A stretch of 52,290 nt of DNA, filler included, from Ylistrum balloti (GCF_031769215.1; 2 parts of 2 records of this genome joined end to end with filler, not necessarily neighbours in it); one strand, 5' to 3'. Positions 1 through 21,412 are shown, counted from the first letter of the whole stretch. Numbers and translations are program-made. Notes: generated by a model not told the origin, from the sequence alone.

Positions 1-500
1 GAGGACTTTCATTAGAATCAACACCAACAAAGAAAGGACCTTTCGTAAAGGGAGGACATTTTGGAGGTCCTCTCTTTTCCACCTCCTAATTTTCCTTATT
101 CAGCAATAAATTTTCATTTTTTTTACAAAAAAGCCCGTCCTTTCTTTGTCCCAAAATTGGACAGTGTGTGATGCTCTTCACACAAAAATATCGATGGTGT
201 GTTTAACTTTCATTAAACTTCGTACACACTTGGCGGGGAAAACTTTTGGGTGCGTATAAAATTACAATTTTAAAAGAAGCGACGCGCAACCTTTTTTCTC
301 GCTTACTCTTACTGTAATAGAAGTATACGGACAGCAATATGCATATACCGAAATAAACATGGCATTCCAATATTTTAATCTTGAGACAAGTTATATCTTT
401 CGAGCTAGATAAGTACATTTCGTTTCGTCAGATTCCGTGTTCTTTTTCTTAACAATACATAAGCTGACATCGGCTGCGCCTCTCCGAGGAGTGAGGCGCT

Positions 501-3500
501 ATGCCTCTTACGAAAAGACTGCGTTCTTTAACAGAGGTAAGTTATCTGTCACATTTTATCTTAACAACGGTAGCTAGCCCCCATGAAAAATTATATAGCT
601 TTCCAACATTTAAAACTGAATTAACTTTGTTAAAAATAGCTTGATTCAACAACTTTATTTCCCACTTGCTTATAATGGCCGCCTCTGTGCGGGATCTCTC
701 TAGATTTGTCATTGTAACTTGACATTCCCGCTCATTTATTTTTGCTATGTTTACAAGCACAAATCTGGAGAGATTCCGCATAGTGACGGTCATTCCAAAT
801 AATAAAATAAGTGGAAGTAAGTGTACATAGTTTACAACATCTAATTGTTTTGATACATATGCACGTACACTGTAGGTAGAAAAATGTTTTATCTTTCAAT
901 CGACGTATAATTTATAAATATCGCGTTGTCATAAATTATCTAAAATATTGCTTGAACGCCGACCCTTGCAGTTCGCGTTTTTTTTGTAAGGAAGAATACT
1001 CTAACTATTGACCGCGACCATGTCAAAAATAAAATCGTGGTGAGATAGTCAGAACCCTTCAGACTACTCTTGCCTTAATTAAGGGGTTAGGCCGATTACA
1101 GGTGGTTCACACCTCCTTTGTTTATATAATTCTAAGCCAGTGCCCTAGTGTCTGGGTTGAGTGGGCTGACTGTAATATATTATATATCAATGTATGATGA
1201 GGACTTTTTACTTCCCCCACTGCAATTTTGAAATTGCACCTGATGCATGCATGTATAATGCTAAACTGCAGTAGTTTAATCTGTGTCCAACATATTGTCT
1301 GGTAAAGCAGCCAGGAGAGAACACATTTAACTTGTCAAAATTCATTATACATGTAACTTATCTCCAGCTGTATTGAAAAAAGGAAAGAAAAAAAAATCAT
1401 GTATTCCTGAATTCTGGGTCTGAATACTGGTCCACTCTTATTATAATACTATGACTACTTCCTGCAATTGATAAATAAAATATCACAAAAAGAAACTCCA
1501 TCAATTTTACAAGGTTAGAAGTGATAGTGTATTGTAATGTCTGGTATCTACTTGTTTTGCATGAAATTTGTTGAGCAGAATGTAATTTGTATAAGAACAA
1601 AAGGAAGTTTGTAGGAGAACATAGCTTTGTTCCTAGTGCTATTAGATTTTTTTTAAGGCTGTCACGGGTACAAAATGTTGGCCCCGAGTACTCGAATTTC
1701 AATACCTGACCCGTAACCAACAATGGTCATGAGTCGTTAGTCTACATGCATACAGTGTTACATGCACAGAGAGGACAAATTTACCTACGTGTAGTGTGGG
1801 GCTTGATACAGTCTCATATAAGGGGGAGGGGGGGGGGGGGGGGGTATAATAAAATCATTTGGAATCGTATGCTTCCTTGCTGATATTTCAGTATTTACTC
1901 ATTGCAAAACTTCATCCTGTAAACGAGAGGATTAGGCTCTATAATGCTAACGTTGTGACAGAATATGAAGAAATCAATTTGCATATAATATGCCCAACAG
2001 AAAGTAGCAGTCCCATGACAATTCTGATCCGGAAAGTCTCTAGCTAGTTTTATACATGTATACGACCATGATTAAGGTTTCAAGTACACATGGCTGCTTG
2101 AGCCAGAGGTGACGGTTTCTGTAATGAAATACAAGTGTGAGTATAAACATTAGTAATACATTGTTGCGTGTGAACATATTGGATACAGAAATTGTAATGT
2201 CATCAGAGTAAGAAATTTTATTGATTTAATAAAGTTTTACTGGTAACATTGACATAAGACCAATATTTCCTATTTTGACGTGTACTCGGGTAGACATTTT
2301 TGAAACAGGTCACTGTTCAAACCCGACCCGTGTCCGGGAACTCATGACAGCCCTAATTTTTTTAACCATCAATTTCTGTATAGCCCCATTTTTGAGAGAT
2401 TTTTCTTGAAATCTTAACAGATTTTTATAATTGTGTAATATATTTTCTTTTCAGAAAAAGAGTAATGGTCCAAAGACAAGGCCACTTGATGACTTCATCA
2501 TTGTAAATATACCAAAAAAAGGTATAGCATCTTTTGTATTGAAAATCCATTCAGAACAATTTAAAAGGATCATTAAATATATTGTCAGACATAAAAAGAA
2601 AAGTGTTTAATATATATTTTATTTCTTTTTCATGCATGTCGATTTACTTCAAGAATAATTTTTTGCTAAAACTACAGAATAGAAGAGTAGAGTAATGATT
2701 TACAACTGCACAAGGACTTGATGGTATTAATGATGTAGTAAATAAGAAATTTAACTGCCGATCCTAGTGCTTATAAATCTCACTTATAGTGTTCAGGACA
2801 GTACATTATTTACATATGTCACATCATCATCTAATTAATTCATTATACAATTCTGATTAATTTGTGTTAAACTTATATATTATGTATTCAGACTGAGATT
2901 TATTTGAGCTAGCATCAGTCATTAGATATTGTGTGTTAAGATTATAGTTGACAAATTAAATATGCAGAATTTAATATCAAAATGTAATCTTTTCCCATAG
3001 GTAAAGGTGTGCTGGCAAAAAAATATATACCAAAAGGGGACACTGTGCTGGAGTATTGTGGTGTCATAAGGACAGATGAACCACATCAAAGTGAGGATGA
3101 CACATATATTTTTGAATGTGTCTTCAAAGGCAAACAGTACTGGTATGTAAGATAGCATCCTGGTTTATTGCATGGTGTCCTAATTTCAGCTGGGCATAGT
3201 TTGCAGGTAGACCATTGCATATTAAGAACAAAATCCATCCAAGTGCCCAACAGAACATTTACATAGGTAGTGTTAGTGCAGTTTTTTTTTTAAAGCAGCA
3301 TTTTCAGGAAATTGGGAAAATTAAAAATTACTTATTAAAGCCAAAACAAAGTAATTTTTTTCAATTTCTGTTTTTATATTGGCCGGAAAAAATTCCTATG
3401 TTTTTATATTGACCGAGTACTCGTACTGTAATCATTTCAAAGGTTTCTGAAAATAAATGGCCCCATTATAGTTCCGTAATGTTAATTACAGGTAAACTTT

Positions 3501-6500
3501 CCTAGTTTTGAAATTTTTAAGAGATCCACATGCTCTTGTTTTTCTTTGTCTTTAATCAGTAATTTCCGTACTGCATGCTCTGTCTAGATTCCACCCCAGA
3601 TCTTGTTTTTAGTCTCACCCCAGCATACAAAATGGTGGCACCCATGTTTTTGTTTTGTTTCACTTTGGGACGATAATTAAGCAAGTTAGTGTCACTACAC
3701 ACTGTTTTAACATGACAGAATTCAAGAATAGATTCTTATAATATAGTTTGCGTTGTTCAGTACAACTTATATAGGTGTCGTATTTAAGTTGAAATCTGTT
3801 CTCGAATCATCTGCTTAATAGGCAGAATGCTTTTCACCACTAGGGCTTATTTGCCCTTCACAGTAAGAACTACGCTAATATTAGCACTTTGAGACATTTG
3901 GTTATATAAATTAGAAAAGGATGTTTACAGATTTAACATATTTAATTATTGTGACCTTAAAAGTGGGTCAAGGTCATTTATACTTGTATTGTAAAACTTG
4001 ACTACCAATGACATTCACATCTTACATACTACTAGTTCCAAATTATTCTAATGTTCTATCGACTCTTCATAAAGTTCTGGTATTGATGAATGTAAGAACT
4101 CTGTCCTGACGGAAATAAGGGACCGTGCCTTGGCTAGCATTAAAAGGGTGACTTTAATTATATCATAATATATGGAAATAATTTGTCGTGTTCACCAGCT
4201 TTAATTAGATCGGAGACCCTGGTGTCTACATTTTAGAGACCCCAATCAGAGTTTTTGCCAGGCATCTATAGTACCGGACCCATTCCCAATTTCAATCTGT
4301 ATTTTCCCAATTTGAATTAAAACAAGAAAACCTTAAAATATCATGCTAACAGTTATTACGAGTTTTCAGTCATTAGGCCTAATCATGTCGACCACACAAA
4401 TGTACACACGTATATTGGTAAGCGTGCGCTGGGAAGTCAAATCATATATGCGTTTGAATTGCACGTTGTATAAGGACTTGAATGCAAAGCGTTTACGGTA
4501 CATTGACATGTTTTTTAATGGTATTGTCACATAATTCTAAATACTACACAAAAAAGATTTTGGTGAAGGATTCATAGGATTTGGTGAAACTTACTAGTAT
4601 TTTCCCAAAATTTATGAAATACCAATGATATTTTCCCAATTTGTGGTAAATGCCGATGATATTTTCCCAATTTTTGCTCAGGGTCCCTTTCCCAAAATAG
4701 CTGGCAAAAACCCTGCCAATGTGGTTATTTGACAGTGATTTCACTATACTACAACCTGTTGTAAGTCTTCATTTTAAATCAGTGATCTTCAGTAAATAAT
4801 TACCATCTCGGCGATTGCATACAATAGTACGCGTTCAGCCCAAGCCGGATGTCATCAGTCTCCTCATACTCAACGTGTTAACTGTCATTAACCATTAATT
4901 ATACAATCAGCCAAGCCTTTCATGCTTGTTAGGTCACCTGGGTAAATTTGTTTACTTAAGGTAATTACATGTGTTAGGGTCACCCTCATTGTGGTTTCCT
5001 AATTATCAATGGATCAGACCACATCAAATGTTTCATCGCAGTGACCAGTCAATTAATTTTTCTGTAGAATATTTTTTTTAAAATCTGATCTCCAAAAAGT
5101 ACCTGCGCACTATACGCAAGTGCGCACTCTATGCGAATATTTACGGTAACACAAAAAACCTCTTGCCGTGTATTAATATTTTTCACTACCATATTTGTCC
5201 GCCAATAGGCCCATGCTCAGTAATAAGCCCACCCCCTTTTTTTTACCAACATTTGGGGGGGGGGATGTCCGGTAATAAGCTCATCCCCCATTCCGACCTC
5301 AGCAGTAAAAAAATCATGTAATGTGCACACTTGTGTAATATGAGTACCCTCAACTTAGGGTCTAAAAATGCTTAAAAAAATGCTTCTATTCGGGTAATGT
5401 TTGCATGATTTTCCTGTCAAAAACAATGTCCAACATACCTGGAACACTCACTCACTTGAGCATAAAATCTGTTTGTTCATGGTTTCTCAGCGAAGTGGGA
5501 TAATTTTACAAATAACATTTCTGATTTTCAATAAATTTATAATGAGAAATCAAAACATGACAAAGTTTTAGCGGTATGCCAACTTTTTTTTCACAGGTTA
5601 GCTGCAACGCATGATGATGGATCACTAGGCCGTCTGATAAATGATGACAGAAAGCCAAACCTGAAACCAAAGATGGTTCCGATTTGTGGAGAGCCCCATA
5701 TTTTCTTCTATGCCATCAGAGATATACATCCAAGGGAGGAATTGTTATACTGCTATGGAAATGGTCCATATCCCTGGAGAAATACTACAAATGTAAAGGA
5801 CTCTCCAAATGATCTTGTATCCAGTATACAGAAGGATAGTATACCTGTGACAGAAACTGATGATACTGCTACATACAGTTCCAATGAACCAGCATCTGAC
5901 ATTTCTGTGTCAATGGTCAACATCCCTGCATCTGCAACTGATGCCAGCAAACCAGATACTGACTTTTGTAAGTATAAATTATATATATGTTACACTTTTT
6001 TTTATATTGTTATGTCTTTATTTCTCTTGTGACACAGGAGGAGGATGAAAATAGGGTTCTAAAGACCTCTGATGAACAAATAATAAACATGTATCCCAGT
6101 AATCATCAGGAACAAAGTAAGATTATTTATCCTTTTGCAGTGATTTTTAGTAAACAATTAAGTAATTATATTATTTGCTGTATTGTAAAATCAAAAAAGA
6201 GAAACCATTTCATCTTTCTGTCACAAAGTTTGTATTTGAAACACATTCCTGTATTATCACTTTACCTGATGTGTATATATTACATTTTCAGTAACTACAC
6301 ACAGTCCTGAATGTATGTTACCAGATGTAACTGATGAAGATGTGATGGCTCCCTCATCGGTTGACAAGCATGACAAACCATCAAATCTACCAAGAGATAC
6401 AGTTGCTACCCTGGATGATGGCATTGATAACACCCCAGTTTCAACGACAAATGTACAAGTAGTTATGATGGAAACTGATGTTACTGCTACATACAGTTCC

Positions 6501-9500
6501 AATGAACCATCATCTGACATTTCTGTGTCAATGGTCAACATCCCTGCATCTGCAACTGATGCCAGCAAACCAGATACTGACCTTTGTAAGTATAAATTAT
6601 ATATATGTTACACTTTTTTTTTTTTTTTGTTATGTCTTTATTTCTCTTGTGACACAGGAGGAGGATGAAAATAGGGTTCTAAAGACCTCTGATGAACAAA
6701 TAATAAATATGTATCCCAGTAAGTATCAGGAACAAAGATTTTTTATCCTTTTGCAGTGTTTTCAGTAAGTAAATAAAGTAATATTTATTTATTTATGAGT
6801 ATTATCATGATTGGCTGTATACATGTGGAGAATTGAAACAGGGAAAAAATGTTCATCTGTCTGATACAAAGTTACCTTCTGTATTGCCACTTTACCTGGT
6901 GTGTATATTATATTTTCAGTAACTACACACAATCCTGAGTTTAAGTTACCAGATGGTGAAGATGTGAGAGCTCCCATATCAGGTGACAATAACCATGATA
7001 GAACATTAAATCTACCCAGAGATGCAGTTGCAAGCATTTGTGATGAATTCACTCCAATTTCTAGAGCTTGCTTTTATGTTCTGTCTGGATTTCGAATTAC
7101 TGAGGTATGTTAAGTATGTGAGTGGACAATGTGTGTTTTCAGTACACAACAAAGTTATTCCATGCCATAGATAACAGAAAGTGTGGGTTGGACTGTAGAC
7201 TTTTTATATGTTCATGTCAGTATTAAAATATTTATCATTTGTTCATTCCTTAATACCCACTTTTCATCTGACCTGCTTTCATGTAATTTTTACTTTTTTC
7301 ATCCAAACTCTTGGCTTCAGTACTACCTCTGGATGGTTTTCTAACTAACTAAATAGGGTCTTTCTATGTTCCATCGGCCGAAGGGTAAATGCCTTTAGCC
7401 CATCTAGATTTAAATCTATACATATGTTAGGGCTTTGTGTTAAATGTCTGTACTTGTGATGTGATTATCTACAACTTATTTGTATCTTGACAGAGGGGCA
7501 GACTGCCTCAAAAAATTAACATATTACTTGTCTTCAGCACAGTCGGTATAACTTCACTGATCATATACATCTAATTATTGTATGTTTAAATAGGAAATCA
7601 AAAAGAAATTCAGAAGAGTGGCCATTGCATCAGGATTTAGGAAATGCAGATACCTTGACTCCTTCTCATCATCTGTTACCCATGTACTAATGAAAGAAGG
7701 TAGGTTCAAGTTGTTAGCTAAATCTTCCTGTTTTGTGGTTTTAATTTCAGTGATTAATTTGGATGCATCTTATAGTATATAAATCTTGATTTTCTTATTT
7801 TTGCAAAGGATGTTTTTAGACAGGTAACATTTTACTTTTTTTTTTTACTTTTTTTTTTTAACCTATATTTTTTTTTTTTTTTAACCTATATAACATGGTT
7901 TTGGTATATCAGATAAAATTTAAACTTGGACATACATTGAGGGTTCATCGTCACCATCTTTGCAAGATTGTGAATCTGCTGATCCGTTATATGAGCCATC
8001 TGATACCGACACAGATGAAGAGTAGGTATTCATAACATGGTATTCTTCATTAGCTTCTCCTAGTTAGGTTAAAAGACGCAACCTTGTTTCCCAAATCAAA
8101 AATTTCTATTGCATTCAGTTTTTATGTCGCCTGCTTTAGCAGGTGACAGGTAAGTATTGCTATGTCGGCGTTGGCGGTATCATCCACCCTATGGTTTCTG
8201 TGTGATAACTTGAGTTATCTTGGACCGATCAAACTCAAACGTCACACAATGCTTCCTTACCAATAGAGCTTGCCTAGGGTTGCTTTTCAGGGTCGATGGT
8301 AACAGGTCAAGGTCACTATTGTTAAAAATAGATTTTTTTTTCTGTGCGATAACTTGAGTTCCTCTGTGCCAAATAAAGTCAAACTTCACACAATACTTCC
8401 TTATCAAAAGTGCTTGCCTGAGATTGCTTTTCAGGGTCGAGGGTCAAAGGTCAAGGTCACTCTTACTATAAATAGAAAATGGGTTTCTGCTTGCTTTGCA
8501 GGCGACACATCAACTTTCGTGGAATTCTTGTATGAGTACTGTTTAATATAAAATTTACGAAAAGATATTTATACATGTGTTAATGTTCAAAATCATTAAA
8601 TCATAAAAATAGCAAAAAAAAAAAAAAAATGAAATAATTTAACTGTATACTGATGTATTTCACAAAAGATGTCTTCCAATGACAATACCATTTAATATGT
8701 AACTTGCACCATTTTTAGCTCACCTGGTCCGTGGTGTCCGTCAACAATTTCTTTAATTGACTTCTTATAAACTACTGGGTGGAATTTGGTCAAATTTGGC
8801 TGCAAGTATCCTTGGCTGGTGGGGATTCAAAAATGTACAAATGAAGTGGCTGACCCCCCAGGGGCCTGAGGGGCAGAGCCCAAAATGGGAAATTTGGCCA
8901 TATAGCTTTAAGCATCTTCTTCTCTGAAACTAAATAATGACTATCAATCATATTTCGCTGGATGAAGCATCCTCAGAGTCGAGAATTCAAAAATTTACAA
9001 ATGAAGTGGTTGCCCCCCATGGGACTGAGGGGCGGGCCTAAATGGGGTACTTTGGCATTATTACTTTAAGTATCTTCTTCTCTGAAACTAAATAAATGCT
9101 GTGGGTCATATTTGGCAGGAAGCATTGTCAAGAGTTTGGGATTCAAAAATGTACAAATTGTCAAGCTGACATTGGAGGTGGGGGGGACAACTTATGCCTA
9201 GAACTCTTGGTCATAAAGATCCAGGTGAGCAGTACATTCCCTCTGGGCCTCTTGTATTACATTATTACTGTAATTTATTTTATTTCATTTATTTATTTAC
9301 TTATTATTTTTCTGTTTGTCCTCGGTGTACTTCCGTAGTGTAGATTCCTGTTGCGTATTATTATTAATTATTTTAGTACCAGAAGCAAGTACTGAGTCCA
9401 AGTGAGTTATATGGTGTGCATGATTACACTAACTTTTTTCCCAGTAAATGATTAAAAACAAGATAAGCTTTGAAAGTATTTTTATATCTCTGCAACGGAG

Positions 9501-12500
9501 TTTGGGGGTTAATTTGGAAACAGCTTGTCCATCCATCCCCCCATCTGTCTGCAGACAGACCTTGCCCACTCAACTCTTCCTACAATTTTCATTCAAAATC
9601 CTTTAAACTTAATAGGCTGTTAGAGTTAAAGTTGAAGGTGTGCTTCTTGATGTTATTTTTCATCTTCCCAACCATTTTTATGAAAGTTAGGCCCCTTTAC
9701 ATTTTGCTCAATTATTATTTCCACAAAGACACATACAAAATTTAATCAAACAGTCTCTGGATTAAAGATAGGATCATAATAATTGAAACTTAGCAAATCG
9801 TGTAACCTATTAATGCCTATAAATATCATTCATAGGTGTTCCAGTACCGTTTCTATGGAAACATGATTGGGACTATGGTTGATTGATAATGAAAAATTGG
9901 TATACAGGTGTTGTTCGACATGAGAAACACCAAGGTGAAGTTCATTTTGTGAAATTATAGTTGCCATGGTAACCAGGTCACTATACACAGGTTTTTGTGA
10001 AATAGCCATAACTCATCAACCCTGTGGTCATTTTTATTGAAACTTGGTCAAATGGTGCAACTTATTCCAGTACCATTACTATTAAAACATGATTTAGGCT
10101 TTTGTTTGGACGAAAATGAAATAGTATCAGATTTTCACGGAAATTGGTATATAGGTATTGTCTTTCATCAGGAACACAAAGATGAAGTCCATTTTCTAAT
10201 GTGAAAATATGGCCTTCGAGGGAGGCTTCTGATTTGTCAAATTTAGATATTGTTGGAATTTTTGTGAAAATTGAGTCAAAGGTATTGTCTGTGAGGAACA
10301 TGGCAATGCAGTTCTTTTTCTGATTTTAACACCTGAAACAGTGTATGGGGCATATATACTGGAATCACTTGTCAGACTCCGTGGCTAAAACAATGCATGT
10401 ATAAATTCTTTGCATCTGCAGGGGTTTTAGCTATCTTCATGATGACAGTTCTAGTTATAACATAAACGGTCCTTTTCCATCTATAACATGGACCGTTTTC
10501 AAAAAAAAAATGCTTGTATCACTTGCCAGTTTTTAGTACAAAATGTTTTTTAGTATTATATATTCATTGGAAGAAAATTATATCCTGGTTGGATCTAGTC
10601 TGGCAGTATTTTCATTTAACTACACTTGTATAGTACTTTAAAAGTTCTTTATTTGAATTTTTTAAAGGTGGAAACAATTTATTTACAATACTTCTATGAG
10701 CTGTTGATTAACACCGGAAATCAATCAATCCATGCCATACTTTAATATGTAGTTAGCTATAGGTAAAAATCAATTGTTTTATGCAATATTTCATATCATT
10801 TGGTAAATGATCTAGAGAGGTAGAGGTTGTCTTACAGAGTATCTGAAATTGAAATGAAAAAATTCTAACCTATGACAGTACAACCAGATATATCTCTTGC
10901 ATTCCCATCAGTTACTAATGATGTCGTCCAGACATATTTCTAGCTTTTAGTTAATTTTTACAGAGTTATTGACAACTCAGCCAGATCAGATGACTCAAGT
11001 GAAATCCCAATCTTGGATCCCAAGGCTTTGAATCAGACTGAAGAAAATATCCAAAAAGATGGAGTTACAGTTAAACTGTTTTCTCAGAATAAAAACAGGA
11101 AAAAAATTTGGGATAAAAAACACTACTGCCTATATTGTAACAAGCCTTTTGCAAAACTTCCTCGACATTTGGAAACTCAGCATAAAGATGAAATTGATGT
11201 AATAAAATTGCGTTCACTAGACAGGCGTAGTAAAGAACAAAAAAGTGCAAGAGCTACTCTGATTGACAAGCTGAGAAAAGCCGGTAACTATAACCATAAC
11301 ATAGAAGTTCTGAAATCTGGACAAGGAGAGGTTGTACCAAAGAAAAGTTTAAGTAAGTCAAGAAGCAGTGATGATTATTTGCGATGTAGACATTGCCTTG
11401 GATTTTACCTAAAGCATGATCTATATCGGCATGTCAGCAAGTGTACCTTCCGTGAGGAAAAACTTGTTAAAGGGACAAGACACCAAAGTAATAGTGCTTT
11501 TCTTCTGCCATCAACTGCTTCAGAAAAGGCTGGTTCAGATTTTCAGAAGGATGTCGTCGCCGACATGAGTGTGGATAACATTTCACTGTGTGCAAGAAAT
11601 GACGAGTTAATCATTCTGTTTGGGGAAAAGCTTTACAAAAAACATAAAGCTTTGCCCCACATGCATCAATACATCCGAACAAAAATGAGGGAACTGTCTC
11701 GTTTTCTACTGAAGGCACGAGAGGAAGATGAAGATATAGTTACATTATCAGATTGCATCCAAGCAAACAAGTTTGAGACCTGTGTCAAAGCTGTGAGATC
11801 ATTATGTGGAGTTAAATGTGGCACAAAAGCGGATATCCCATCTTTAGCTTTGAAAATTGGATTTTCATTGAGCAAATGTGCCAATATCAGATTATCAAAA
11901 GCTCTGGTAGAGGGTGATTCTAAGGTACAGGATAATGTGGAAAGGTTTCAGAGACTGTATTCTATGGATTGGAATACTGAAGTTTCTTCCACAGCATTAA
12001 AAAGTCTAGAAACAAAGAAGTGGAACAAGCCTTCATTGCTTCCACTCACAAATGATGTAGTGAAGTTCCAAAAGTACTTGGACCAGCAAATTGATGCCAA
12101 CATAAAACTTCTGGAATCAAAAAACGCCCAAGGTTGGAGGCCATTGTGTGAAGCTATTTTAGTTAGCATCATACTGTTCAACAGAAGAAGGAGTGGTGAA
12201 GTGGAGAGGTTGTCCTTGGATGTTTTCAGTCTCAAAAGCAAAACTGACCTCATGCCAGACGTGAAGGAAACCCATAACAATTTGGAAAAACATCTTGTGG
12301 AGAATTTGTCAAGAGTGGAAACTCGTGGAAAGCGGGGAAGAAAGGTGCCAATTTTGTTCCCCAAAAAAACAGAGGAAGCACTGGATCTTCTCATACAATA
12401 CCGATCAGCAGCTGGAATAGAAAAGGGAAACCCATATGTGTTCGCTAACAACGCAATAGGCTATGTACGCGGAGCTGACTGCATGAGAAGTACAGCATCG

Positions 12501-14299
12501 GAAGCAAAGTTAGAAAATCCAGAAAATATGAGGTCTACAAATTTAAGAAAACATGTTGCAACACTTTCGCAAGTTGTTAACTTGAGGGACAATGAACTAG
12601 ACATTTTAGCTCAGTTCCTTGGACACGATGTGAAGGTCCATAGAAATTTGTATCGTCTCCCTGAGGATACTATTCAAATTGCTAAAGTGGGAAAATTACT
12701 TATGGCAGCAAACAAAGGAACATTGGGAAAGTTTTCTGGAAAGTCTTTAGATATTAGCATTGACCAAGAAGGTAAAAATAAATAAGACATATAATTATAG
12801 TGTATCATTGAGTTCTTTAATAGGTTTATTACGGTGGTAATGATGCTTTTAGAATTTTTATATATCATGTTCTGTACTCAAAAAGTTCAAACTGCTTTCA
12901 TGAAAGGTCACATTGATAATATCTTTTGGCATCTGCCATGACCAATGTAGTTAGTAAGGATATCTAATATTGTTTCAATAGTTTCATTACAGAAACAGTT
13001 GGTATTTCATTCTTATGTTAAATAGTTATTTTGAATACAATTGTACAATTAAATCATTTAATTTGTCCTTGTTACAGTGTCTGATGAATCCGAATCTGAG
13101 GATGAAACTACACAGTCTACAGAAGTCAGAGATCAAGGTAAATAACATGCATGAATTGAAATACAGTGGACCCACGATAATCCAAACGCCTAAAATCCGG
13201 AAAACTCACAATCCAGACAAAATGTTTGGGAACAGATTTCTTTAATGTTATTTGTACATAAATTCGGCAGTCCGGAAAACTCGTAATCCGGACGATTTAG
13301 GCTGGAAATGAAAGCGTCTGGATTTTCGAGGGTCCACTGTAAATGCCATGTTGTAGATCTTTTATGTCTTGGCCAGTTGGCAGAACCTGTCTTCATCTCG
13401 TGACTTTGGCAGAATATACCTGTGAATGAGCTTTTAGTAAATGTATTGTAGGAAAGCCTTCAAACATCAGTAAAGATGTAAATGTCCCATCATTTTTTCC
13501 CCGCAGATGATGCAGATCAAGATAATGAGAAAGCAGGAAAGAGAAATAGCAGAAAATCTCTCCACAGTACAGAAGCCACTTGCATGACACAGAAACCAGG
13601 TATTTTTTTATGTTTATACATCATATAGAATAAAATAGGGTGGTCGGGTGGTGCAGTGGATAGCGCACTTGCCTTTCACCAAGGCGGCCGGGGTTCGATT
13701 CCCCGATCGGACGTGAAAAGGTATGGGGTCACCTGCCCGACCACGTGGGTTTCCTCCGGGTTCTCTGGTTTCCTTCCACACAAAGACCCCTCGCGCGCTA
13801 ACACCTGGGCCAACAAGAGTGATTAATATAAGTTGTATAACTTGTTTCATAATTGTTGTAAAATAAATAAAGTTTATAGTTTATAGAATAAATGATTGTC
13901 ACAGTAAAATATAACTTGTGTATCTGTATATCATATTATATCTGGACCATAAGTGTCTGTGGTACATACATGTAATTGGATTTAAAGATAGAAGTAACAA
14001 AAAAAGTTTGTAATTTATACTGAAAAGGGTTTTAAGAGCAGTTCACAAAATAATCCTGTATAGTTTATCTTGTTTCTTTAATAGGAAGTAGGAGAACTGT
14101 AAAGAGAATACCATGGACAGAAGAAGAGAGAAGTGCTGTTAAATCAGAAATGGAGCATTTTCTTCATATCAGGAAAACTCCAGGAAAACTGGACTGTGAC
14201 AACTGTTTACGCAAATATCAATGTCTGAGTAGAAGAAATTGGAAAAACATCAAAAACTTTGTCTACAATTGCATTCAAAGTTTAAAGAAATGTCATTAA
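501..14299 (+). CDS. Multi-exon gene: SET-domain lysine methyltransferase fused to tyrosine recombinase plus C-terminal Myb/SANT-like domain (Crypton-like transposase)
   Basis: Manual splice model: join(501-536,2455-2521,3001-3142,5597-5967,6292-6585,6920-7104,7594-7699,7913-8021,10964-12771,13078-13137,13507-13599,14085-14299). All introns are GT-AG with matching phases (0,1,2,1,1,0,1,2,1,1,1). The total is 3486 nt = 1162 codons, with one in-frame TAA at 7921-7923. An alternative path (skip 7594-7699, use 7913-8025) is fully open at 3384 nt. The protein starts MPLTKRLRSLTE-KKSNGPKTRPLDDFIIVNIPKK-GKGVLAKK and ends NIKNFVYNCIQSLKKCH*. Exons 7-8 are the least certain. Confidence 0.82.
1654..2355. 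mobile_element. hAT-like MITE in intron 1
   Basis: TIRs TAAGGCTGTCA / TGACAGCCCTA, with 8-bp TSD ATTTTTTT at 1646-1653 and 2356-2363. Confidence 0.7.
3001..5775 (+). CDS. SET domain (exon 3001-3142 plus 5' part of exon 5597-5967)
   Basis: Spliced translation GKGVLAKKYIPKGDTVLEYCG...YIFECVFKGKQYW/LAATHDDGSLGRLINDDRKPNLKPKMVPICGEPHIFFYAIRDIHPREELLYCYGNGPYPWR. It contains SET motifs GxG, EYxG, GRLIN and ELLYxYG, and resembles the KMT5A/SETD8 type. Confidence 0.9.
4247..4715. mobile_element. MITE with 15-bp TIRs and 5-bp TSD
   Basis: TIRs CAGAGTTTTTGCCAG / CTGGCAAAAACCCTG (1 mismatch), with CCAAT at 4242-4246 and 4716-4720. Confidence 0.7.
5853..7050 (+). repeat. Tandem ~620-bp duplication of an exon-intron-exon block
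   Basis: 5853-6470 is highly similar to 6471-~7050 (GAAACTGATG...CCAGATACTGAC.TTTGTAAGT...CACAGGAGGAGGATGAAAATAGG...TTTTCAGTAACTACACAC). Confidence 0.9.
8119..8531 (+). mobile_element. Non-autonomous Helentron-like (HINE/DINE-1-type) element
   Basis: It starts in a T run. Subterminal IR TGTCGCCTGC (8125-8134) pairs with GCAGGCGACA (8498-8507). It has a 5' local palindrome and ends in CTTGT. Confidence 0.6.
8712..9255 (+). mobile_element. Non-autonomous Helentron-like (HINE) element
   Basis: TTTTTAGCTCACCTGG at the start, CCAGGTGAGC at 9221-9230, and a 3' end GGGCCTCTTGT. Confidence 0.65.
9479..10456 (+). mobile_element. Helentron-like (HINE) element, possibly composite
   Basis: TTTTTATATCTCTGCA at the start, TGCAGGGGTT near the end, and a 3' CTAGTT. 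The internal sequence is of the same style as 8712-9255. Confidence 0.45.
10964..12771 (+). CDS. Large exon: Zn-finger-like motifs plus tyrosine recombinase (lambda integrase fold) catalytic domain
   Basis: ORF 11013-12785 extends 5' to the acceptor at 10962-63 and ends at the donor at 12772. It has CLYC..RHLETQH and CRHC..RHVSKC motifs. YR motifs are NRRRSGEV (R), RGKRGRK (K), STNLRKH (HxxR-equivalent), LGHD (H) and VHRNLY (catalytic Y at 12651-12653). Confidence 0.92.
13164..13339. mobile_element. Tc1/mariner-type MITE
   Basis: TIRs CAGTGGACCC / GGGTCCACTG, flanked by TA on both sides. Confidence 0.8.
13635..13881 (+). mobile_element. tRNA-derived SINE
   Basis: A box TGGTGCAGTGG (13649-13659), B box GGTTCGATTCC (13692-13702), central CACGTGGGTTTCCTCCGGG core and AT-rich tail. 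11-bp TSD TATAGAATAAA at 13624-13634 and 13882-13892. Confidence 0.85.
14085..14299 (+). CDS. Terminal exon, Myb/SANT-like helical domain
   Basis: After acceptor TTTAATAG it reads GSRRTVKRIPWTEEERSAVKSEMEHFLHIRKTPGKLDCDNCLRKYQCLSRRNWKNIKNFVYNCIQSLKKCH*. W-T-x-E-E and R-x-W patterns are Myb-like. It is absent from the ORF track. A candidate AATAAA lies at 14839-14844. Confidence 0.75.
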
Positions 14300-15286
14300 A
14301 TGATGTCTAAGTAGGCAATATAGACATAAAAAGAAAAGCAATTTCAAGTTACATGTTGGAAAATATAAATGAGATTCATTGCAATTAAAATGAAATTTTG
14401 TAAGAATTTTTGAATATTCTTTTTATTGAAGTTTTATCATGATAATAATTGTAAGGTAGAGATTGCATGATGGATTGATAAAGGATAATTGTTGTTTTGG
14501 CAGACTCAATTCGGTCAAGGGGATTTATAAATGAAATTTAGAAGATGCATTATTTAGTGTTAAGATGAAATACCATTTTGTTGATATTTACCTTCTACAC
14601 TAGTTGCATTAAAAATATTTGTAATGGAATGAAATTTGAGAAGAAAACTGTATATTTCATGCTTTGTCATCCTTTACATATTGCAGTGTACAAGTTTGAC
14701 TGTGATCAAACTTACTGGTAATGATTATTCTTGTTCTCTATAACATTACTGTATCAGATACGTCACTTTTTTTTTATTTTAAAAGTGGCAGAAGGTCACA
14801 CAATGTGTTAAATTCTGTTCATTGATGCTTAATGCAGGAATAAAGTTCACTTATATTGAACATTTCATTTGCATGTTTTATTCCTCATGTATTTTTTTAA
14901 GCTATTGAGTAAACAAGTAATCATTGATAGTTTGATTGAAAAAAAAAATGACTTTGGCGTTACTTTACATTGCCAAATAAATTCAAACTGAGGTAAAATT
15001 TGATTACTTTGTATTGCACAAGGGTCTAAACACAAGACATGCATTGTCATGGCAAATGAAATGTCAGACGTAGTGTTTCACCTTTTGTTGCTGAGATATA
15101 AAGTTGTTATTCAATGACAGTTTAAAAAATGCTTTTGGAATCCACTTTAGAATAGAAATTATGTTGGATCATAATGACTTTTGTTTTTGTTGTCCTAATA
15201 ATGAGACGGATTCAATTTACGGAAATAATTTCATTTTTCCCCCAATTTTTGACATGTTTTGTTCTTATCTTTGTCAGATGGTAATA

Positions 15287-15463
15287 CAGTGTAACTTGTC
15301 TAAACCGGCCCCTGTGTAATCCGGATCTCTCTGTATTCCAGCCAAAATGTTTGGTCCCAGCACTGGAAAATGTAAGCAATGTTGACCTCTACGAACCGGA
15401 CACCTGGGTAAACCGGCCAAAAAGTTTGGTCCTGGTGACATCCGGTTTAGACAAGTTACATTG
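15287..15463. mobile_element. Tc1/mariner (pogo-like) MITE
   Basis: 22-bp TIRs CAGTGTAACTTGTCTAAACCGG / CCGGTTTAGACAAGTTACATTG, flanked by TA on both sides. Confidence 0.85.
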
Positions 15464-15559
15464 TATATTGCATCTGTTTGTGGTGCTTGTGTTCGATTTG
15501 AAAGAAATAATAAAAAATAAACCTCAATGATTTATCTCGCCTTTTGTGTTACTTAATAC

Positions 15560-16027
15560 AATATTGCCCCTAGGGGCTGATAACAGGGACAAAGGATCAA
15601 ACCGAATGAAAGATTGAATTTACTATTTGATATCTTTTCACTGATAAACATTTGATTATAACATGGAGCAAAGTTGGTGAGAACTAAACTTGGAGCCAAT
15701 TTACCAAAGGTCAATGTCACTGGGGGAAAGGTCAAGGTCAAATGTGGTATCTAGTCACTGATAAATGTTTTGTTTTCACATGATGAAGCAAAATTGACTG
15801 GAATCAAACGAGAAGTAAAATGACAAAAGGTCAAAGTCACTGGGCAAAGGTAAGAAAAAATCCGCCCCTGGTCGCTGGGTTAGAGCAGAGACCTATATCA
15901 CCATGGTTATATAACTAGGTCTCTGGTTAGAAGCCTGTTTGATATCTCTTATTATGAAAACAAAATATCAGTTATATGTATAAATACATCAGAACTCAGG
16001 TGACCATTAAGGCCCATGGACCTCTTC
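15560..16027 (+). mobile_element. Degraded Helentron-like (HINE) fragment
   Basis: Repeated AAAGGTCAAGGTCA motifs as in 8119-8531, and a 3' end TCAGGTGACCATTAAGGCCCATGGACCTCTT resembling the end of 8712-9255. The start is approximate. Confidence 0.45.
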
Positions 16028-16216
16028 TATATAGTAAAAGAATTATGAACTTTTTACTTTGTCAAAATGCTGTTCTATTTGCTAGAAGAAAACATTAACA
16101 AAGGCGATTGACTGCATAGAAAACGGATATTAACCGATGTATCTTTTTCTATGGATAGTCAATATGAACGTATTAGCCAAGTAATACATATATATGTATA
16201 GGACATGTATGTACAG

Positions 16217-16680
16217 TCACGTCCTCTTTTTGGAGGTTACACACGTCCTCTCTTTGGAGGTGTCTGACGTCCTCTGTATGTTCACACACGTCCTCTGTAT
16301 GTACACACACGTCCTCTGTATGTTCACACACGTCCTCTTTTTGGAGGTTACACACGTCCTCTCTTTGGAGGTGTCTGACGTCCTCTGTATGTTCACACAC
16401 GTCCTCTGTATGTTCACACACGTCCTCTGTATGTTCACACACGTCCTCTCTTTGGAGGTATCTGACGTCCTCTGTATGTTCACACACGTCCTCTGTATGT
16501 ACACACACGTCCTCTCTTTGGAGGTAACACACGTCCTCTGTATGTAAACACACGTCCTCTGTATGTAAACACACGTCCTTTGTATGTACACACACGCGTC
16601 CTCCGTATGTACACACACGCGTCCTCGTTTTGTATCTAAGACACATTTGTCCTCCCTTTGTCGCAAATGTCCTCTCTTTT
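16217..16680. repeat. Composite 21/24-bp minisatellite with constant ACGTCCTCT core
   Basis: 21 GTCCT sites from 16221 to 16669, with spacings 24,24,21,21,21,24,24,21,21,21,24,21,21,24,21,21,23,23,28,20. There are two unit types: ACGTCCTCTGTATGTTCACAC and ACGTCCTCTYTTTGGAGGT(TACAC/GTCTG). Confidence 0.95.
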
Positions 16681-16846
16681 CATTCATTTTCAAATGATAA
16701 TAACGAAGCATTTAAATTACTTAGGTTAAATGAAAATTACGTGGTGAGTATACCTTCCAAGCCCGTTGTTTGCAGTCATTAATTACTGTGATAATACCAT
16801 TATATGTGAGTGCCCTTGGTTTACCTTTGGGAGCCAGGTCCTGACT

Positions 16847-17012
16847 NNNNNNNNNNNNNNNNNNNNNNNNNNNNNNNNNNNNNNNNNNNNNNNNNNNNNN
16901 NNNNNNNNNNNNNNNNNNNNNNNNNNNNNNNNNNNNNNNNNNNNNNNNNNNNNNNNNNNNNNNNNNNNNNNNNNNNNNNNNNNNNNNNNNNNNNNNNNNN
17001 NNNNNNNNNNNN
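16847..17012. other. Assembly gap (N run)
   Basis: Run of N. Confidence 1.
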
Positions 17013-19410: not shown

Positions 19411-19850
19411 TGTACCCAGAATCATGTCTCTCTGTCTGTACTCGGAACTCAACGTATGAATTTAGTACCCTGAATCACGTTTCTCTGTCTGTACTCGGAA
19501 CTCAACGTATGAATTTAGTACCCTGAATCACGTTTCTCTGTCTGTACTCGGAACTCAACGTATGAATTTAGTACCCTGAATCACGTTTCTCTGTCTGTAC
19601 TCGGAACTCAACGTATGAATTTAGTACCCTGAATCATGTCTCTCTGTCTGTACTCGGAACTCAAGGTATGAATTTAGTACCCTGAATCACGTTTCTCTGT
19701 CTGTACTCGGAACTCAACGTATGAATTTAGTACCCTGAATCACGTTTCTCTGTCTGTACTCGGAACTCAACGTATGAATCTAGTACCCTGAATCACGTTT
19801 CCCTGTCTGTACTCGGAACTCTAGGTATGAATTTAGTACTCTGAATCATG
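19411..19850. repeat. 53-bp minisatellite, ~8 copies
   Basis: Unit TGAATCACGTTTCTCTGTCTGTACTCGGAACTCAACGTATGAATTTAGTACCC, with copies starting at 19471, 19524 and onward. Confidence 0.95.
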
Positions 19851-21256
19851 CCTTATTTAATAATTTTTAACTTAAACAAAGCAAGGCTTGAGCACAAAAT
19901 TCATGCTTGAGCATGAGAACGGTTTCATGAATACGGGCCCTGGTCTTATTCTCCATTCTCCTTTCTTTTGGTCATATTTTTAACATAATTATATTGAATT
20001 CGAGTTAGGATTATAATTATGCTGACATGTTGGTACATGTAACTTGACCGACACATAACCATTTGAAGGACAAATTAATCTGTGGTGTAGTTTTGTATCT
20101 CAGAATGATGTACCGATAGCGCAATGGCTATTTTTGCATAGAGTCTGTTTGTATGCATTTGTCTGCCTGGAGTAGATGCATTTGTTTGGGTTTCCACTGG
20201 TGATGATACCACTGTAATTTGTCTGTGGTTCCGTGAGATAATCAAACCTTTGATTCCCCCAGACATTTTCGTCGATTGTCTCCCTATCATTGCCACTAAT
20301 GGTCAATGCGCAATCTCTTTAATCTTACACGAGTGTTATTTTTGGAATAATGCTACCGTTGTAATTCCGTTTCTGTTATTTTACGATAATCTAGCAGAAA
20401 TCTATAATGAATTGATTCCATCACTGGTGACAAGACTCCCGAACCCGTGGCAGGATTTTACGACGAGATGACATCCGTTCAATTCGGTCCAGACAGGTAG
20501 AGCAACATCAGATATAACAGACAAGTGTGTATCTCAGAGAGCAAGTCACACGCGGACGCCGCTTTGTGTATAAATAAACTGTACACATGTTTATATACAT
20601 ACGACATAAAATACAAACATATTGAAGTCTTGTGTAGAAGTGATAAACCTGGAGCCGGCAAATCAATCTCTGGGATTCTAGCAAAGTAACAATAGAGACT
20701 TCGATTGTATATTAAATTTAAAGCTTGCAGCAATACGTAGGCTTCAACGAAACATTAGACTATGAACAGAGTGTAGTCGTCCACAGTACATTCGGCTAAA
20801 GTCAATGAAGGTATGTATATAAATGATACAAATTGGGCTATTGGAAGAATGCTGTATAATTCACCTATCTCGACAACTTTCCATCTGATTTTCTTCAGGG
20901 TGAATTATAAGTGTGATGAATTCAAATTCCCTTTTGTGAACTTTCCATTTCTGGATAGCAAGATGCTTTTCTTTACTTTGTTCTAATTTCAGAACGTGAC
21001 ATTACTTACATGAATTCACTTAGCTTTATAGGACAGGAGTCGTAGATGAAGTGAAAGACGTTAACCCTCTTGGAACATGATTTTTTCATCATTGATATTT
21101 TCACAGGAAGAAAAGGGCGTTAGGGTTTGGACAATAGAGTGTTCAAGAGCACACTTTGGCTTTGGAATTCGTATAAAACACGTCAGGTCAGGTCAATACC
21201 GCCCTCTTTATTCTATTTTTAGTCATTATGGTATCCTGAAGTCATATTCCCATAGT

Positions 21257-21412
21257 CCGACCTTGTACAATATCAGCTGACAGTCCGACCTTGTACATTA
21301 TCAGGGGCTGACAGTCTTACCTCCGACAATATTAGGAGCTGACAGTCTGACCTCTGACAATATCAGGAGCTGACAGTCTGACCTCCGACAATATCAGGAG
21401 CTGACCTCTGAC
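21257..21412. repeat. ~31-bp minisatellite, ~5 copies
   Basis: Unit ACAATATCAGGAGCTGACAGTCTGACCTCCG. Confidence 0.9.

Follow-up and report, generated by a model that had tools for sequence, protein, structure and literature searches.

Conserved GTCCTC sites and a subterminal tandem array in a putative Crypton-like element of the scallop Ylistrum balloti

RESULTS

A multi-exon tyrosine recombinase gene within a repeated unit

The DNA analyzed here (the window, 52,290 nucleotides in total, filler included) is from Ylistrum balloti, and the part of it described below belongs to contig JAUZWB010001132.1 (locus L005) and is 100% identical to it. Positions 1 to 16846 are the visible part of one copy (copy A, plus strand) of a repeated unit whose left end is at or beyond window position 1 and whose right end falls within positions 16847 to 17012. 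On the plus strand of this unit, a multi-exon gene (501 to 14299, with the start codon at 501) encodes a protein with SET, zinc finger, tyrosine recombinase, and three-helix domains, together with a BRCT domain in copies that retain the relevant exons. Its exons include 501 to 536, 2452 to 2523, 3000 to 3143, 5598 to 5966, 10962 to 12770 (two zinc fingers and the recombinase), 13077 to 13136, 13506 to 13601, and 14084 to 14299. The 590-amino-acid open reading frame at 11013 to 12785 is 98% identical to a Y. balloti protein. There is no other long open reading frame in positions 1 to 16846, and neither a reverse transcriptase nor another transposase was found there. The public record annotates copy A as three gene models of 403, 446, and 152 amino acids. 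Contigs from runs X8 and X10 contain a GT..AG joint from 13597 to 14083 and extend over 14083 to 16025 and from 16592 to beyond 16846.

Pfam searches of the full 1,415-amino-acid product (P0121) returned two domains, SET (3.8e-19) and BRCT (9.4e-10), and gave no match for the recombinase or the C-terminal domain. As Pfam is blind to these two regions, we relied on predicted folds. The AlphaFold model of the 590-amino-acid exon product has a mean pLDDT of 84, and its top Foldseek matches are all tyrosine recombinases (XerH at 2e-05, XerA, IntI, Cre, lambda Int, and Tn1549 Int) aligned over 370 to 420 columns. The model confirms that the large exon product has the predicted two-domain tyrosine recombinase fold, with a core-binding and a catalytic domain. 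Across 34 homologs, the arginines of RRRSGE (391 to 393), K440, R512, H538, H543, and Y547 are invariant or nearly so; these residues were assigned as catalytic by their order and motif, not by superposition, and the His of HxxR is not evident. The last exon is modeled as a three-helix bundle of the homeodomain/Myb type (pLDDT of 91), with TM scores of ~0.6 to 0.8 to known structures and E values that are not significant. The same domain order is seen in homologs from fish, echinoderms, cnidarians, insects, and molluscs, frequently as numerous copies. DUF3504 was not matched at E values up to 1, either by the exon product or by residues 960 to 1300 of P0121.

Several other repeats are present in and around the gene. 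At 5848 to 7100, an exon-plus-intron unit of 618 to 628 bp is repeated three times in tandem and encodes a repeated acidic, serine-rich linker; an oyster relative (L003, 3536 to 10600) has 11 to 12 tandem units of 600 to 740 bp at the same gene position, and every one of them contains a (CT)n tract. A tRNA-derived SINE (13614 to 13880, with the tRNA-like head at 13643 to 13713) is found in the intron preceding the last exon; contig depth over it reaches up to 62,000, and there is an inverted partial copy of this SINE at 29102 to 29169. Within 13089 to 13341, a second high-copy repeat, at 13162 to 13341, has inverted arms of 28 bp. A MITE-like insertion of 183 bp occupies positions 15284 to 15466, and its terminal inverted repeats are 25 bp long and 96% complementary; contigs of X8 and X10 skip 15284 to 15464 exactly, and the insertion is thus absent from those animals. 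It is high copy there, at a depth of ~12,000. Run X5 (coded organism B) has no contig over the recombinase exon at 10900 to 12900 and normal depth over 13893 to 16846, a pattern that may reflect a presence/absence polymorphism, a genotype with copy D only, or a filter artefact.

Four copies of the unit share a right end

The unit is 17 to 24 kb long and occurs in four copies in the Y. balloti genome, on four contigs with unrelated flanks, at 98 to 99% identity. Copy A, which runs from window position 1 or earlier into the stretch at 16847 to 17012, has lost 4.2 kb with the BRCT exons (approximately 7722 to 7938, compared to 20187 to 24367 of L004). These exons are kept in copy B (L004), which is 23.7 kb long, starts at the point matching window position 197, and carries an intact gene for the 1,415-amino-acid protein. 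Copy C (L001) begins at window position 6236, where it adjoins telomere-like and satellite repeats. Copy D (L007) joins window positions 486 to 5969 to 15171 to 16846, so that the SET exons, 10 array cores, and the right flank are kept and the recombinase is lost. The right end is common to all four copies, and the left ends differ. The unit thus occurs as several similar copies at unrelated loci accompanied by a nonautonomous derivative, as expected of a Crypton. With only four copies, a recent segmental duplication is a possible alternative.

At the right end, copies B and C can be aligned for 14 to 22 nucleotides beyond the point matching 16846, after which each has a GT microsatellite, followed by unrelated sequence (based on coordinates and TRF). 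In the window, the right boundary lies inside the N stretch at 16847 to 17012, and the sequence from 17013 onward is unrelated to the continuations of the paralogs. This stretch, which the sequence-only reading had taken for a gap, is not an assembly gap but a deliberate mask, as it corresponds to 166 letters in the public record of L005 and both sides are collinear. Copy B has (GT)n on both sides, with its left homology starting at ~197 beside a (GT)n tract. We considered and rejected the possibility that copies C and D also start at GT runs, as (GT)n adjoins the left end of copy B alone. In the repeats that precede copy C (L001, 6588 to 9890), a 450-bp satellite is intermingled with telomere-like (TAACCC)n; they lie well inside a 177-kb contig.

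A GTCCT-core array near the right end

An array of GTCCT-core units occupies positions 16206 to 16680 on the plus strand, 0.2 to 0.65 kb inside the right end of the unit. It contains 21 cores, the first at 16221 and the last at 16669, with start-to-start spacings of 24, 24, 21, 21, 21, 24, 24, 21, 21, 21, 24, 21, 21, 24, 21, 21, 23, 23, 28, and 20 bp. The array is built of 24-bp B units (..GTCCTCTCTTTGGAGGT.. / ..ACGTCCTCTCTTTGGAGGT..) and 21-bp A units (..GTCCTCTGTATGT.. / ..ACGTCCTCTGTATGT..), followed by three degenerate end units. TRF reports a period of 111 bp (3.2 copies, 87% matches), and the order BBAAA occurs twice, at 16206 to 16316 and 16317 to 16427, with 96% identity between the two blocks. 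The core count, the predominance of 21- and 24-bp spacings, and the 111-bp unit occurring twice are all as the sequence-only reading of this DNA had described them.

That reading had also connected the array to the left end of the window, 16 kb away, and these matches hold. The B-unit halves TTTGGAGGT and GTCCTCTCTTT are present at 60 to 68 and 67 to 77, respectively, within the interval 60 to 77 where they had been placed. The direct match between the array end and the left region, put at 12 of 12 positions, in fact extends to 13 of 13 (16669 to 16681 and 67 to 79). The inverted match was said to extend imperfectly, and it does so over 27 of 32 positions with two gaps, giving a score of 35 against a shuffle maximum of 26. 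The longer motif GTCCTYYCTTT occurs 10 times in 29 kb, compared to 0.10 expected, with six occurrences in the array and four at 29 to 147; there are none elsewhere in the 29 kb scanned. GTCCTC occurs 28 times, against 7 expected.

Helical phasing, which had been proposed for the array, applies to part of it. The 21 bp of an A unit is two helical turns, and runs of A units are in phase, but the array as a whole is not, as each 24-bp unit introduces a shift of ~100 degrees and 111 bp corresponds to 10.6 turns. Nor is phasing a conserved property: in relatives, the units are 21/24, 35, 67, 90, or 149 bp long, or the sites form irregular, nonrepetitive clusters. Spacings in other lineages range from 14 to 93 bp and do not keep to multiples of ~10.5 bp, as those of a helically phased array would.

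The array is a minisatellite in the usual sense of tandem units of 10 to 100 bp that vary in number between copies, with 20 to 23 units in the paralogs L001 and L004 and 10 cores in L007. The first two and the last five units are the same among copies, and the interior turns over. Contig depth in public Y. balloti runs is ~93 to 126 over the 3' region and 270 to 390 over the array, where contigs fit several places. Contig depth over the array is ~1 to 4 times that of the recombinase exon, compared to 62,000 for the SINE 2.5 kb away, which argues that the array is not a genome-wide satellite. The earlier reading had held that this is not an unrelated minisatellite, and had named paralogs lacking the array, or scatter of the repeat through the genome, as findings that would count against it. 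Neither was found: each of the four genomic copies of the recombinase unit carries the array at an identical position, and its contig depth is low. To the question raised there of whether such arrays accompany other copies of the YR gene, the answer is that the array flanks them, and also one derivative without the recombinase (L007). We conclude that the array belongs to the element and is subterminal.

Outside the element, the window holds further minisatellites that are unrelated to the array in sequence, at 19412 to 19848 (53 bp, 8.2 copies, 96% matches), 21254 to 21412 (31 bp, 5.3 copies), and 23265 to 23741 (24 bp, 19.9 copies). A G23 tract (1822 to 1844) and a C45 tract (26808 to 26852) form an inverted pair 25 kb apart and are probably unrelated homopolymers.

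Conservation in Argopecten

In the recombinase exon, Y. balloti and Argopecten irradians share 50% identity at four-fold degenerate sites (K of ~0.84), and neutral DNA should therefore not align between these species. Most introns and the rest of the 3' region indeed gave no alignment. The array end units (16621 to 16685, plus strand) are the best-conserved part, with 50 of 65 positions (77%) identical to A. irradians, including the exact 17-mer AAATGTCCTCTCTTTTC. The unique right flank of the array (16686 to 16846, plus strand), which is identical in paralog L001 and ends in CAGGTCCTGACT (16835 to 16846), is 62% identical to Argopecten over ~160 to 170 bp and has exact blocks, among them the terminal CAGGTCCTGACT. 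Alignment scores are 70 for the end units (null maximum, 21) and 66 for the flank (null maximum, 30).

In Argopecten, the array is built of 35-bp units in which ACACA.AGTCC and TTTGTATG are retained. Its orientation is opposite to that of the gene, and 133 bp separate it from a (GT)n tract. We dropped a mini-element reading of this locus, as on inspection the 133-bp interval that separates (CA)n from the array has no obvious likeness to the scallop left end. The Argopecten copy beside the inverted array (L002, 19364 to 21171) has a frameshift in the recombinase exon at ~20635, seen as two tblastn segments in different frames, and is thus probably decayed.

A conserved site cluster upstream of the gene

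Four sites form a cluster at the left of copy A, two on the minus strand (29 to 39 and 47 to 57) and two on the plus strand (67 to 77 and 137 to 147). The inner two make up a head-to-head pair, GAGGAC-N9-GTCCTC (52 to 72), an 11-bp palindrome. A further palindrome, GTGTGTGA-N6-TCACACA, lies at 164 to 184, just before the point at which copy B homology starts, and a TATA-like box read from the sequence, GTATAAAATTA, lies upstream of the gene at 254 to 264 on the plus strand, 110 to 230 bp downstream of the cluster. Window positions 24 to 300 align with A. irradians (L008), where all four GTCCT/AGGAC cores are kept, as are the pair (GAGGAC-N9/10-GTCCTC), the palindrome at 164 to 184, and the TATA-like box at 254 to 264. 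No (TG)n is present at the A. irradians left side. Judged by this alignment, the left cluster is a conserved feature 5' of the gene, and is neither a chance occurrence nor copy-specific flank.

The sequence-only reading had placed the same motif at the left end of the element. The motif does recur left of the gene, but the cluster need not mark the terminus of the element. Copies B, C, and D, which start at window positions 197, 486 (copy D), and 6236 (copy C), are without it, and the left cluster is therefore not needed for the existence of a copy. We also tried window positions 60 to 200 as a decayed copy of the right flank, and local alignment gave nothing beyond the motifs themselves.

GTCCTC clusters, site pairs, and right ends across the family

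Sites of the same kind occur with more distant members of the protein family. Two oyster copies (37% protein identity) have a common right boundary at a (TG)n tract and, within 320 bp of this right end, one exact GTCCTC and one GTCCCTC, without an array; this is not significant alone. At a tarpon locus (44% identity), a 150-bp stretch lying 4 kb upstream of the gene contains three copies of TGAGGACC and two of GGTCCTCA; the cluster includes a head-to-head pair with a 10-bp spacer, and there are two GGTCCTC sites 2.7 kb downstream of the gene.

A scan of metagenome contigs gave 80 family loci, some of which are near-duplicates. Clusters of at least three GTCCTC sites number 26 among these loci, compared to 12 for the next of 60 hexamers of the same composition. 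Because the raw cluster ranking is dominated by AT-rich and microsatellite words, frequency-matched hexamers were used as controls: clusters of at least five sites per 400 bp are found for GTCCTC at 8 of the 80 loci, whereas the 713 such hexamers average 0.68 and reach 5 at most. The clusters lie 2 to 8.5 kb downstream of the recombinase exon, with sites mostly on the same strand, and a cluster of at least four sites is present at 7 of the 20 metagenome loci that have at least 5 kb downstream. They are nonrepetitive in L018, L020, L028, and L055 and consist of tandem units of 67, 90, and 149 bp in L040, L054, and L035, respectively. Arrays or clusters of many sites are found, independently and with differing unit structures, in six or more lineages. 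Lineages with sites are 36 to 47% identical in protein, with the exception of one subgroup (62 to 71%).

Orientation and distance to the right end follow a recurrent layout. Sites are in direct order on the plus strand in L018, L020, L028, L040, and L055, and these clusters, like the window array, lie 27 to 190 bp from the right end in cases where the contig extends that far; in L035/L036, the array and the gene have opposite orientations. In L020, L028, L037, L040, and L055 (four lineages), (TG)n begins 27 to 54 bp after the last site, with the junction ACACGTATG(TG)n. The oyster junction is ACAAGTATG(TG)n and that of Argopecten is ACGAGTATGTGTGG. Many family sites are preceded by ACACAC, like the scallop units. 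The subterminal right-end position assigned to the array by the sequence-only reading is borne out, and both this place and the one left of the gene are conserved in Argopecten and in relatives with less than 50% protein identity.

Head-to-head pairs GAGGAC-N-GTCCTC have spacers of 8, 9, or 10 bp (six pairs, five lineages) or 28 bp (three pairs) and no others. The reverse arrangement has no occurrence within 40 bp, and 118 control tests gave nine matches in all. In L031, a (TG)n run lies left of the pair.

Other repeated words are found at some right ends. In L039 (10150 to 10282), ACTCCACT occurs three times before a terminal GTATG(TG)n, and in oyster TGTAGTG occurs four times before (TG)n; in oyster copy L006 (17470 to 17870), the complement CCACTACA occurs three times just beyond (TG)n. 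These words may be lineage-specific replacements of the site.

As the GTCCTC clusters of relatives are tandem with various units or nonrepetitive, it is the site that is conserved, and not the repeat unit or its phasing. These comparisons show conservation of the hexamer and the bases immediately around it, of its position close to the right end, and of the pair, but not of the repeat unit or of its length or phase. The alignments and counts indicate that the GTCCT core is kept across the protein family, together with a layout of direct sites, short spacer, and GTATG(TG)n. They likewise indicate that the head-to-head pair GAGGAC-N8-10-GTCCTC, which lies across the gene from the right-end array, is family-wide.

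DISCUSSION

We conclude that the unit is best explained as a low-copy, Crypton-like element, of a SET-BRCT-recombinase family for which we found no description. Cryptons are eukaryotic DNA transposons whose movement depends on a tyrosine recombinase (Goodwin 2003; Kojima and Jurka 2011, PMC3212892). Those of animals were reported to have no terminal repeats and no C-terminal domain, and CryptonA recombinases are similar to DUF3504 with E values of 8e-12 or better (PMC3212892). For Crypton ends, a 2026 review gives short direct repeats alone (PMC13465315). The scallop element resembles Cryptons in its single, intron-bearing tyrosine recombinase gene without a reverse transcriptase, in its near-identical copies at different loci and its deletion derivative, and in having no terminal inverted repeats and boundaries that are hard to define. 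It differs in its length of 17 to 24 kb, in its SET and BRCT domains, and in its subterminal array, site pair, and GTATG(TG)n right end, and its protein differs from those of CryptonA in lacking similarity to DUF3504. To our knowledge, no cis-acting sequences are known for animal Cryptons, and, as the main survey detected no terminal repeats (PMC3212892), ideas on their boundaries and mechanism have been conjecture. In the literature outside Repbase, we found neither a SET-BRCT-recombinase element nor GTCCTC sites nor a right end with GTATG(TG)n described.

The arrangement of the sites has parallels among characterized tyrosine recombinases. A head-to-head pair across a short spacer is the standard core-site layout of these enzymes, with typical spacers of 6 to 8 bp. 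FLP is the eukaryotic tyrosine recombinase of the yeast 2-micron plasmid, and its target, FRT, has one motif three times, two head to head across a spacer of ~8 bp and a direct copy beside one arm. Window positions 29 to 77 have the same layout (minus, minus, spacer of 9 bp, plus). In contrast to the scallop element, FRT has arms of 13 bp, lacks a long array, and functions in plasmid amplification rather than transposition; the two are unrelated in sequence. The internal resolution site (IRS) of TnpI in Tn4430, and lambda attP and Tn916/Tn1549 with their arm-type sites, combine an inverted core pair with direct accessory repeats, and accessory sites gather extra protomers and give the reaction its direction. 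In these bacterial systems, the accessory sites number two to five and binding has been shown experimentally, whereas the scallop element has up to 21 sites and a different protein architecture. At the level of sequence, the family has two features of a recombinase site set, namely an inverted motif pair with 8 to 10 bp between hexamers and further direct copies of the motif near the element end.

The array also resembles an ordinary minisatellite, or the repeats of bivalve MITE/Helitron-type elements, in its tandem 21- to 24-bp units, its higher-order structure, and its variable copy number. It differs from these in that the core hexamer is kept where the repeat unit differs or is absent and is tied to one gene family and to one element end. 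We therefore favor, with moderate confidence, the reading that the scallop array is a cluster of candidate GTCCTC binding sites that has been multiplied in tandem, and that it serves as an accessory block at the right end of a Crypton-like element. Observations that weigh against this reading are the three Y. balloti copies without the left cluster, the inverted arrays of A. irradians and L035/L036, the limited share of metagenome loci with clusters (7 of 20), and the one or two sites of oyster.

Other explanations account for parts of these observations. If only the end units, the pair, and the terminal motif were functional, the array body could be a neutral minisatellite shaped by slippage or unequal exchange, and we consider this unlikely but deserving of attention. 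It would accommodate the different unit numbers of the copies (10, 20, 21, and 23), the turnover of the interior between stable edges, the different unit lengths of the two genera (21/24 and 35 bp), and the greater conservation of the last units. Oyster and tarpon have approximately two sites, and minisatellites abound in the genome, the window holding three others. However, the independent many-site clusters of at least six lineages are hard to explain by a neutral body, and the array persists in both scallop genera at a K of ~0.84. It is rather improbable, in our estimation, that the sites act instead in transcriptional or chromatin control, as a promoter-proximal operator and a 3' element bound by a host factor or by the three-helix or zinc finger domain of the element's own protein, for autoregulation or for targeting of SET. 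The left cluster is just upstream of the conserved TATA-like box and the start codon at 501, the protein has chromatin-type SET and BRCT domains, and copies B and D exist without the left cluster, all of which would suit such a role. Against it, the direct clusters of many lineages adjoin the right end and (TG)n, not promoters, and the pair with its 8- to 10-bp spacer has the classic layout of a recombinase core site; moreover, a site for a host factor would need to be kept alike in chordate, mollusc, and other elements.

We give very little credence to the suggestion that the array acts as RNA, either within a long 3' untranslated region, through its structure or by binding protein, or as a source of small RNAs. 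Runs X8 and X10 do show a spliced joint and contigs through the array end, although the RNA nature of these runs is a guess, and B units can form a small hairpin. These hairpins are nevertheless weak (z of -1.4), A units have none, and the window has no Rfam match. The array is also inverted relative to the gene in A. irradians and L035/L036, where a transcript would carry the complement. Scarcely credible at all is the reading in which an unrelated satellite, or the interior of a foreign transposon of the bivalve MITE/Helitron type, came to lie near the gene by chance and makes up the array. Bivalve genomes hold many MITE/Helitron-type elements with central repeats, and a MITE and SINEs are nested nearby, but the array is in the same place in all four copies, is conserved beside the gene in another genus and in distant relatives, and has low depth, and the remaining 12 kb of the 29 kb scanned do not contain its pattern.

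Returning to the reading of the array as an amplified cluster of binding sites, we consider that the element's own protein probably binds GTCCTC, as the site covaries with that protein family across phyla and this protein is thus its most economical reader. The head-to-head pair would be the core site at which two recombinase protomers exchange strands. The direct sites would be accessory and would load several protomers on the right end, and the loaded end would then pair with a partner site, as with FRT, the Tn4430 IRS, and the lambda attP arms. The direct sites themselves are unlikely to be a half-site at the crossover, as their distance of 27 to 190 bp from (TG)n is too great. Site number and spacing would be free to drift, and such drift could have led to the 21 sites in a 21/24-bp minisatellite here and to the 2 to 13 sites in other arrangements elsewhere. 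Recombination anchored at the right end would account for four copies that agree there but differ in where they begin on the left, although, with so few copies, later deletions or segmental duplication at microsatellites may be responsible instead.

A broader proposal is more tentative, and we put it forward as a possibility that may well not hold in full. GTCCTC, the pair, and GTATG(TG)n could be the cis recombination signals of an undescribed, animal-wide superfamily of large Crypton-like transposons with histone-methyltransferase-type SET domains and BRCT domains of their own. In this proposal, the signals would form a site set like those of FRT or the IRS, the elements would integrate at (TG)n or generate it, and the variable left ends would result from right-end-anchored recombination with secondary sites.

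The analysis provides a candidate site set for one widespread family, made up of a hexamer, a pair whose spacer length is defined, and a motif at the terminus beside (TG)n, which makes the mechanism testable with oligonucleotides and a reporter. The same set is a signature for finding full-length and nonautonomous copies in any animal genome, and some (TG)n microsatellites may be element ends. The scallop minisatellite may thus be better understood as an amplified cluster of candidate binding sites than as junk.
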